IMG/VR virus record: IMGVR_UViG_3300040801_004034
Coordinates: 124,001-188,000 of that record
Reading direction: 5' to 3' (one strand)
Length of the DNA: 64,000 nt
The notes below the pieces were generated by a model. The model was given only the letters and a program-made list of their open reading frames with translations. It was not told the origin of the DNA and made no database searches. Both the position numbers and the translations under genes were made by a program. Below are positions 15,531 through 15,809 of the stretch, piece after piece (positions within the stretch are counted from its first letter, which is position 1; every line of letters starts with the position of its first letter).

Positions 15531-15809
15531 TATAGGAAGTTGGCTTAGAAGCAGCCATCTTTTAAAGAGTGGGGTCCACTCTCCCTTTGTGACTTTGTAA
15601 CCTAGCCGGTCTGAACCAGGATAAGGTAGGCGAACACAAAATAACAGCACTATCGTAATGATCTGCGGTAACTGTTTGAGTTAGTTGCGGGGAGCGTTCA
15701 GAGTGAGATTCGAGTAATACGGCCGTGAAATGACACGGTTTCGAAATAGCAAAGCTCAGAAATGATAACCTTGCTATAAACCACCCCTTTGGCGTAAAAG
15801 CACACTATA
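15531..15809 (+). ncRNA. 23S rRNA H43/H44 (L11-binding domain) mimic split by a 221-nt insertion
   Basis: AGGAAGTTGGCTTAGAAGCAGCCATCTTTTAAAGAGTG...CGTAAAAGCACACT. Confidence 0.75.

Follow-up and report, generated by a model that had tools for sequence, protein, structure and literature searches.

Results

A phage gene that copies a ribosomal RNA domain

The window analysed here, a 64,000-nucleotide (nt) stretch of the 221-kb viral contig IMGVR_UViG_3300040801_004034, contains between a tRNA-His and a tRNA-Leu gene a small RNA gene of ~283 nt (15529-15811, + strand) whose core reproduces the GTPase-associated centre (GAC) of 23S ribosomal RNA (rRNA), the domain made up of helices 42 to 44 (H42-H44, nt 1051-1108). 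An initial annotation, made from the sequence of the window, had proposed a free-standing mimic of this L11- and thiostrepton-binding domain, and the proposal is borne out by the coordinates of the element, its match to the large subunit (LSU) rRNA model and covariation across a family of related elements. It is very nearly certain that the gene specifies a functional RNA with the GAC fold and that it belongs to a family widespread in phages. Such a family is not in Rfam 15, and a description of a phage RNA that mimics the GAC was not found in the full-text literature, outside whose coverage most subscription journals lie; we therefore regard the element as a phage RNA of a new kind, one that is encoded on its own, in trans, and copies an rRNA domain in full. 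We know of no earlier case of a viral stand-alone gene that copies a whole functional rRNA domain.

The element consists of the following parts:

15529-15533, + strand: 5' strand of the outer closing stem, which pairs with 15807-15811 and stands in place of H42
15534-15570, + strand: 5' half of the GAC, 23S positions 1054-1090 (E. coli numbering), identified from the Rfam LSU match and covariation
15571-15787, + strand: variable expansion arm in H44, closed by GGGGU/ACCCC and unique to this phage
15788-15791, + strand: UUUG linker from the insert stem to G1091, conserved in the family
15792-15806, + strand: 3' half of the GAC, 23S positions 1091-1105, with the upper H44 hairpin and its 1095 loop, A1101 (15802) and the 3' strand of the H42 end
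15807-15811, + strand: 3' strand of the outer closing stem, which pairs with 15529-15533

The 5' half holds the end of H42, the H43 hairpin with its 1067 loop, the 1082-1086 turn and the lower 5' strand of H44 as far as U1090; A1067 corresponds to 15547 and A1095 to 15796 (E. coli 23S numbering). H44 is split after U1090 by an insert that, with its linker, is 221 nt long (15571-15791) and has a base stem formed by GGGGU (15571-15575) and ACCCC (15783-15787); both the length and the complementary ends given in the initial annotation are confirmed in the sequence. The TATAG/CTATA closure that it described is also present (15531-15535/15805-15809), as part of a longer stem (15529-15535/15805-15811), and U15570 (U1090) is able to pair with A15802 (A1101).

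When a 331-nt stretch was compared with the bacterial LSU model of Rfam, 15534-15586 aligned with model positions 1095-1146 (29 bits, E 2.8e-7), a score below the family gathering score, as expected for a piece of only 52 nt. No other Rfam 15 family matches the element at its gathering score or at E <=10. Only 0.01 copies of the 18-mer from the H43 hairpin would be expected in the window, which has one. Further pieces of 23S rRNA are absent, in agreement with the earlier reading that nothing else of this molecule is present: nothing came from BLAST of the insert against the E. coli rRNAs, from looking for the sarcin-ricin motif in the window or from scanning positions 1-21000 with Rfam by E-value. 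A true rRNA gene or gene fragment was rejected since the element is not continuous with H41/H42 or with H45, its flanks being tRNA genes and a non-rRNA stem. A ribosomal-protein leader was likewise rejected, as no open reading frame (ORF) follows, the next gene being tRNA-Leu, and no Rfam leader family matched.

The element belongs to a widespread family

To assemble the family, IMG/VR was scanned with two exact patterns, each anchored in a different region of the core, and elements were counted among the matches listed. The initial annotation had made its case depend on similar elements in other phages, and at least 111 distinct complete elements were found, one each from 111 contigs, and carriers of this kind of gene amount to at least about 200 viral contigs; cultured phages carry it as well. 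An earlier subset of 88 elements was used for counts of stems, inserts and tRNA context. The core of the window aligns without gaps to 39 other members, with every consensus pair present, and the window contains an ordinary member of the family apart from its unique insert.

Searches of annotated phages with blastn returned the rRNA-like 5' half in Aeromonas phage 4_4572, Pseudomonas phages Astolliot and UNO-G1W1 and Ralstonia phage RSP15, in each of which it lies in an unannotated gap beside tRNA genes and continues, after GAGU, into an insert, with a 3' half to match. Complete elements were read from 37-nt blastn matches in the cultured phages Pseudomonas pf16, Cronobacter GAP32, Xanthomonas XacN1 and Acinetobacter ME3, and further matches of this kind came from Pectobacterium CBB, Serratia BF, several Erwinia jumbo phages and a Vibrio phage; the cultured carriers include jumbo and T5-sized phages. 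Among the matches listed in a scan of bacterial genomes, four phage-type elements also lie in contigs of metagenome-assembled genomes, together with tRNA arrays. Two loci depart from the usual layout. One viral contig (L269) has two GAC-like 5' halves ~320 nt apart (5135-5155 and 5453-5473, + strand), which could be tandem elements or a duplicated core, and another (L254, 3721-3780, + strand) has a divergent 1080-1090 segment that the 3' half apparently follows directly, and may be an insert-free phage version.

It could be argued that the element is a captured fragment of host 23S rRNA, a pseudogene or an assembly chimera, without function. Real rRNA fragments do occur in phage records, as in Paenibacillus phage Pd_22F, the fifth blastn match and a true 23S fragment, and in several short 'phage' records. 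Here, however, only 52 nt are rRNA-like and the flanks are not, derived features are common to phages of unrelated hosts, the compensatory changes described below denote purifying selection on structure, and elements are present in complete genomes of cultured phages. Phages of gamma-proteobacteria have G1089/U1090/A1101, and E. coli rRNA, taken as a stand-in for the host, has A/A/U at these positions; judged by sequence, the element does not derive from the rRNA of its current host. A functionless fragment can be regarded as effectively excluded, and it is the least probable of the explanations considered.

Covariation extends to the tertiary structure of the core

Base pairs of the GAC core are maintained by compensatory change across the 111 elements. 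The pair 1058-1080 is UA in 43, GC in 42, AU in 19 and CG in 5 elements, with one GU and one mismatch, and 1057-1081 is AU in 96, CG in 8 and GC in 2. The pair 1082-1086 is UA (81) or CG (19), 1054-1105 is GC (72), AU (32) or UA (4), 1055-1104 is GC (93) or AU (16), and 1092-1099 is CG (80), UA (26) or UG (5). The outer closing stem is of arbitrary sequence, its seven positions being paired in 71-80 of the 88 elements of the subset. RNAalifold, given 40 tool-aligned members and no structure, returned the same helices, with double compensatory changes in 16 of 22 pairs; such changes run throughout the closing stem (columns 3-9/284-290). Because the same architecture recurs in more than 100 phage contigs with compensatory changes, a chance match is ruled out.

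In the E. coli GAC, C1072 is joined to C1092 in a cis Watson-Crick/Hoogsteen pair and hydrogen-bonded to G1099, while U1060, A1088 and G1071 with G1091-C1100 are tertiary partners (PMC2952862). The triple 1072/(1092-1099) is C-CG in 80 phage elements, U-UA in 25, U-UG in 5 and C-UA in 1, and is thus coordinated in 110 of 111. At positions that the search patterns had left free, U1060 is found in all 111, A1088 in 109 and G1071/G1091-C1100 in 110. When the window was tested for the same contacts, 1072/(1092-1099), 1071/(1091-1100) and U1060-A1088, all were present (C, C-G, G, G-C, U and A). Since the tertiary triple is kept through coordinated three-way change, the comparative evidence indicates that the core of the RNA folds as the GAC does, tertiary structure included. 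The U1072/(U1092-A1099) version, seen in about a quarter of the phage mimics, is also that of true 23S rRNA of the candidate phyla radiation (CPR)/Patescibacteria (loci L126-L245).

The insert is an expansion arm

Throughout the family the insert enters after position 1090. The first three pairs of its base stem are formed in 80-85 of 88 elements, as GC, AU, UA or CG, with compensatory changes in the corresponding RNAalifold columns (47-50/261-264), and the linker to G1091 is UUUG in 89 and UUUA in 11 of the 111 elements. Beyond this base the inserts vary greatly, 88 of them falling into 50 clusters, mostly singletons, and their lengths range from 27 to 364 nt, the shortest (loci L057, L047 and L033) being plain hairpins. 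Position 1101 is A in 109 of 111 elements, and the U1090-A1101 pair, described as compensatory in the initial annotation, proves to be family-wide (105 of 111). As true rRNA and insert-free cyanobacterial relatives (see below) retain U1101, A1101 appears, from this comparison, to be an adaptation by which the new three-way junction is closed.

One group of inserts (family A, comprising those of loci L001, L002, L003, L009, L013, L020, L029, L048, L065, L079, L110, L114 and L116 and of phage pf16) has a common 3' module, in which ..AGUR..RGGCACCCC is followed by a small hairpin, often with a GNRA-like loop, and then by GGUAAGGCUGAA. The insert of the window has no relative among the 88 inserts, and scans of viral contigs with an exact pattern and with a protein anchor returned only IMGVR_UViG_3300040801_004034. 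Its fold is no more stable than that of shuffled sequences (z -1.35).

A self-splicing (group I) or other intron, whose excision would leave a 58-nt GAC RNA, is suggested by the U with which the 5' part terminates and the G that is usually the last base of the insert, a combination found at group I splice sites, and by some resemblance of one insert family to tRNA introns; the window likewise has U before the insert and G at its end. The nearby complementary stretch in the window, however, gives U-A and not U.G, and in the family the junction U pairs with A1101, with no G.U wobble guide. Furthermore, 11 of 111 inserts end in A, no intron core is shared among the inserts, and the Rfam models for group I (Intron_gpI, RF00028) and group II introns gave no match at E <=10 in the window or at E <=1 in four relatives. 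The group I intron, which has a conserved catalytic core (P3-P9) and a length of at least about 200 nt, was dropped on account of this lack of an Rfam match and of inserts of 27-45 nt at the same junction. The proposal in the initial annotation that the RNA is switched on by excision of the insert is unsupported for the same reasons, inserts of 27, 41 and 45 nt occupying that junction and those ending in A adding to the difficulty. An intron is effectively excluded, and the range of lengths argues that the insert is an expansion arm.

The initial annotation had offered refolding as a second way of switching the RNA on. In the window CCACUCU (15577-15583) is complementary both to the 5' strand of H44 (AGAGUGG, 15567-15573) and to AGAGUG within the insert (15697-15702); its pairing with H44, which would unfold that helix, appears in the minimum-energy fold. 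This could be an alternative fold, but as a case for refolding it is weak and is seen in this phage only, no other member of the family having it.

The diversity of the inserts, which form several families and some of which carry modules such as the sarcin-ricin loop (SRL) described below, would fit an RNA in which the GAC core, perhaps bound by L11, is a nuclease-resistant handle and the variable insert does the work. Against such a scaffold, inserts shrink to a 27-nt hairpin, insert-free versions exist (L254 and the cyanobacterial RNAs) and the core is conserved to the level of a tertiary triple. Conservation of the core to this depth, while inserts shrink or vanish, argues that selection acts on the core, and we consider a mere scaffold quite improbable.

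Some relatives also carry the sarcin-ricin loop

Nine phage inserts of 313-357 nt (loci L006, L011, L016, L022, L023, L030, L031, L082 and L112) hold a copy of the SRL, AGUACGAGAGGA, and a tenth (L098, 310 nt) has a variant that differs by one base. The stem of this hairpin, which resembles helix 95, covaries (UUCCA/UGGAA, UCCC/GGGA, GCCC/GGGC and UGCA/UGCA). When the 88 inserts were searched by BLAST against E. coli 16S, 23S and 5S rRNA and the Paenibacillus 23S fragment, the SRL alone was found, and in inserts of ~310-357 nt only.

Matches listed in the scan of bacterial genomes were mostly true 23S genes of CPR bacteria, which naturally contain GUGUAACAAC. Among them, however, an insert-free GAC copy occurs in ~27 cyanobacterial loci (including L127, L141 at ~2440-2459 on the - strand, and L161), within long chromosomal or plasmid-borne tRNA arrays of Microcoleus, Nostoc, Moorena and others. 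Alignment of these loci reveals a conserved RNA of ~230 nt with an SRL hairpin (UAGUACGAGAGGAA) ~60 nt upstream of the GAC, and in several of them a TGTAGTAT motif lies just upstream that resembles the operator of TrcR in the trn operon of Anabaena (PMC10272220), a tRNA operon switched on by antibiotics that inhibit translation (PMC10272220, PMC8421152). These two papers on the operon do not mention the SRL and GAC RNA: the terms '23S' and 'ribosomal RNA' are absent from them, and the few passages that refer to rRNA deal with other matters (PMC10272220, PMC8421152). Nor was a description of this cyanobacterial RNA found in the literature searched.

In the ribosome the GAC and the SRL are jointly contacted by translational GTPases. 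Because nine phage inserts and the cyanobacterial relative add an SRL hairpin, the wider family is, by sequence and covariation, an imitation of both RNA elements of the factor-binding site of the ribosome, of which the member in the window represents the GAC alone.

The genes lie in tRNA arrays

A tRNA gene lies within 3 kb of 72 of the 88 elements and within 300 nt of 57, the distance to the core being in many cases 9-20 nt, and of 391 tRNA genes in the neighbourhood 388 share the strand of the element. Since the element sits beside tRNA genes of the same strand, it is almost certainly transcribed with the tRNA array and would be trimmed by tRNA processing. In the window the processing of tRNA-His probably sets the 5' end of the RNA, and cleavage by RNase P at tRNA-Leu would set its 3' end.

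When ORFs within 4 kb of 87 elements were clustered, no generally conserved protein neighbour was found; the clusters obtained were lineage-specific ones, HNH endonucleases and a DUF2828/DUF7788 protein in five loci. The last, a protein of 460-580 amino acids with both DUF2828 and DUF7788, lies within 3 kb of the element in loci L014, L015, L030, L099 and L120, whose contigs are otherwise different. As no protein family is a general neighbour, the partner of the RNA is probably a host component. In phage pf16 the element has tRNA-Asn and tRNA-Pro on either side, and in phage XacN1 (locus L329, 528-1178) it comes immediately after a gene with the annotation 2'-5' RNA ligase.

The first 20 kb of the window are an RNA island on the + strand, with 39 tRNA genes and a transfer-messenger RNA (tmRNA) called by ARAGORN and a GOLLD RNA identified with Rfam. 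Features of this island are:

14394-14732, + strand: ORF for a PTH2-type peptidyl-tRNA hydrolase (Pfam E 2e-17), 0.8 kb upstream of the element
15447-15523, + strand: tRNA-His (ARAGORN, Rfam), its 3' end 5 nt before the closing stem
15820-15907, + strand: tRNA-Leu (ARAGORN, Rfam), starting 9 nt past the closing stem
16670-17018, + strand: phage-encoded tmRNA with the short predicted tag peptide GENQLMAA
17040-17771, + strand: ORF for a SegE-like GIY-YIG endonuclease (weak match, E 6e-5, just under the Pfam cut-off)
19025-19472, + strand: GOLLD RNA (Rfam, 179 bits, E 8e-49), 3.2 kb downstream of the element

SegE-like homing endonucleases are of a kind known from the tRNA region of T4. A tRNA with the anticodon CUA (14150-14226, + strand; 'Pyl' in ARAGORN) is an amber suppressor, and given this tRNA, TAG may be read as a sense codon in part of the phage genome. 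Embedded in the GOLLD RNA is a tRNA-like gene (19094-19167) that ARAGORN calls tRNA-Tyr, with the unusual anticodon AUA. Between tRNA-Leu genes, ~15966-16066 (+ strand) has a tRNA-like D arm and T arm and is called by neither ARAGORN nor Rfam, while the Rfam E-value scan returned a 114-nt tRNA at 3800-3913 (+ strand) that must contain a long insertion; both stretches may be interrupted or degenerate tRNA genes.

Discussion

The isolated 58-nt GAC RNA is said, from work of the Draper laboratory, to bind L11 tightly in vitro, and crystal structures were reportedly described by Wimberly and by Conn in 1999. The phage RNA would likewise be an L11-binding RNA, stable, abundant and acting in trans. 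Under the mechanism that we favour, tentatively and as the first among several, processing of the flanking tRNAs would release a stable non-coding RNA of ~283 nt, whose conserved core takes the tertiary fold of the GAC (H43/H44), with the arm leaving H44 between U1090 and G1091. The free RNA would bind L11 of the host, offer a ribosome-like surface in trans and draw away, by competition, a molecule that during infection would otherwise bind to host ribosomes at the GAC or modify them there, the likeliest such molecule being a host abortive-infection toxin or a competitor toxin directed at the GAC. It would thus be part of a translation-protection kit of the phage, together with ~40 tRNAs, the tmRNA and the peptidyl-tRNA hydrolase. 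The initial annotation had raised titration of L11 or L10, and a decoy for factors or toxins such as RelA, as possibilities; L10 is unlikely to bind, since a non-conserved stem takes the place of that part of H42 which it requires.

A decoy is favoured because the second module in the relatives, the SRL, is a classic ribotoxin target, and because the neighbours of the various elements (tRNAs, tmRNA, peptidyl-tRNA hydrolase, RNA ligase and a stress-induced tRNA operon) match those of systems believed to shield translation from attack (PMC7824862). It is favoured also because the GAC itself is a proven toxin target: the antibacterial Rhs toxin Tre23 ADP-ribosylates H44 within 1095-1098 and blocks elongation factor G (EF-G; PMC8661411). 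Jumbo phages are thought to counter attack by the host on the translation apparatus by means of tRNAs and RNA repair (PMC7824862).

It should be emphasized that several observations weigh against such a decoy. One for something that reads A1067 and A1095 would be expected to keep both, and A1067 is variable (A in 95, G in 14 and U in 2 of the 111 elements) while A1095 is replaced in at least five. The insert of the window has neither relatives nor structural support, and the conservation of UUUG alongside the great diversity of the inserts is left unexplained by the decoy model. To our knowledge no anti-phage system is aimed at the GAC, and none was found. In addition, a catalytic toxin is poorly countered by a stoichiometric decoy, which would have to be present in great excess or bind as a dead-end inhibitor.

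The relaxation of A1067 and A1095, which contact factors, while the L11-binding fold is conserved, fits a sponge for L11 better than a decoy; the lack of a conserved phage protein partner is also consistent with a sponge. In such a scheme the RNA would sequester free or exchangeable L11, and host ribosomes without L11, whether new or existing, would have a blunted RelA-dependent (p)ppGpp response or retuned translation. RelA activation requires L11, and ribosomes without L11 are viable. Most L11 is ribosome-bound, however, and the infection cycle is short; a sponge for L11 would also leave unexplained both the SRL hairpin of the relatives, which is unrelated to L11, and the occurrence of the cyanobacterial version in a stress-induced tRNA operon. 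We regard it as rather unlikely, and second to the decoy.

A third possibility, improbable in our view, is that the RNA, aided by L11 and in certain members by the SRL, sequesters or regulates a translational GTPase or another protein that docks at the factor-binding site, such as EF-G, RelA or another RelA/SpoT homologue, an HflX- or BipA-like factor or a defence sensor. This is consistent with the presence of GAC and SRL mimics in one RNA, in nine phage elements and ~26-27 cyanobacterial loci, and Munishkin and Wool reportedly found in 1997 that EF-G binds isolated oligonucleotides of the SRL and of the thiostrepton domain. Most members, however, including that of the window, have no SRL, the factor-contact bases 1067 and 1095 are less conserved than in rRNA, and nothing shows that the two modules have a ribosome-like geometry. 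The scaffold discussed above ranks fourth.

Returning to the decoy, the phage and cyanobacterial RNAs can be considered together. It is possible, though we hold the view loosely, that phages and cyanobacterial tRNA arrays encode modular 'ribosome-in-pieces' RNAs which, with L11, would act as decoys that neutralize immune or competitor effectors directed at the factor-binding site.

The phage RNA shares with the GAC of 23S rRNA the near-identical sequence of H43/H44, the secondary structure and the covariation of 1072 with 1092-1099, and the residues that build the fold (U1060, A1088, G1071 and G1091-C1100) are invariant or nearly so. It differs in being a separate gene of ~110-450 nt in which H42 is replaced by an arbitrary stem, in the arm and UUUG that follow U1090, in the Watson-Crick pair of A1101 with U1090 and in the lack of invariance of A1067 and A1095. 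Similar to the cyanobacterial RNA, it is a free-standing GAC copy in a tRNA array and on the strand of the tRNAs, with the SRL shared by nine phage members; in contrast with the phage RNAs, the cyanobacterial version has no insert in H44, keeps U1101, carries the SRL 5' of the GAC and has ~230 nt of conserved flanking sequence.

It is well known that mRNA leaders which bind ribosomal proteins can mimic rRNA, and in the leaders of ribosomal-protein operons (for instance the L10 leader, RF00557, and the L1 and S8 sites) an extraribosomal RNA likewise imitates a protein-binding site of rRNA. These leaders, however, are cellular, cis-acting parts of mRNA and reproduce a local motif only, whereas the phage RNA is stand-alone, lies in tRNA arrays and reproduces a whole tertiary domain. 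With the tRNA arrays, tmRNA and RNA repair functions of phages it has in common the genomic island and, presumably, the logic (PMC7824862). Phage tRNAs can take the place of host molecules that have been damaged, but no such exchange into a ribosome is possible for an rRNA domain, which leaves the phage RNA able only to compete, bind or sense. GOLLD and ROOL are also structured non-coding RNAs of phage tRNA regions, but neither resembles rRNA, and there is no relation to the phage RNA in sequence or structure.

If the family is real and expressed, it would provide the first viral stand-alone gene for a whole functional rRNA domain known to us, and a common one, carried by at least about 200 viral contigs and by several cultured jumbo and T5-sized phages. 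The family would provide a natural system in which to see how the GAC fold tolerates a three-way junction, and laboratory-tractable models for RNA decoys, such as phage pf16 on Pseudomonas putida. Through the insert-free SRL and GAC RNA of cyanobacteria the family is linked to the tRNA operon that Anabaena induces under translation stress, and whose protective action has yet to be explained. More broadly, the L11 stalk and the sarcin-ricin site would emerge as a battleground between phage and host, which would predict still-undiscovered host effectors aimed there. Should the decoy be the true function, these RNAs would constitute a new class of RNA-based counter-defence and would imply that still-unknown defence systems attack the factor-binding site of the ribosome.

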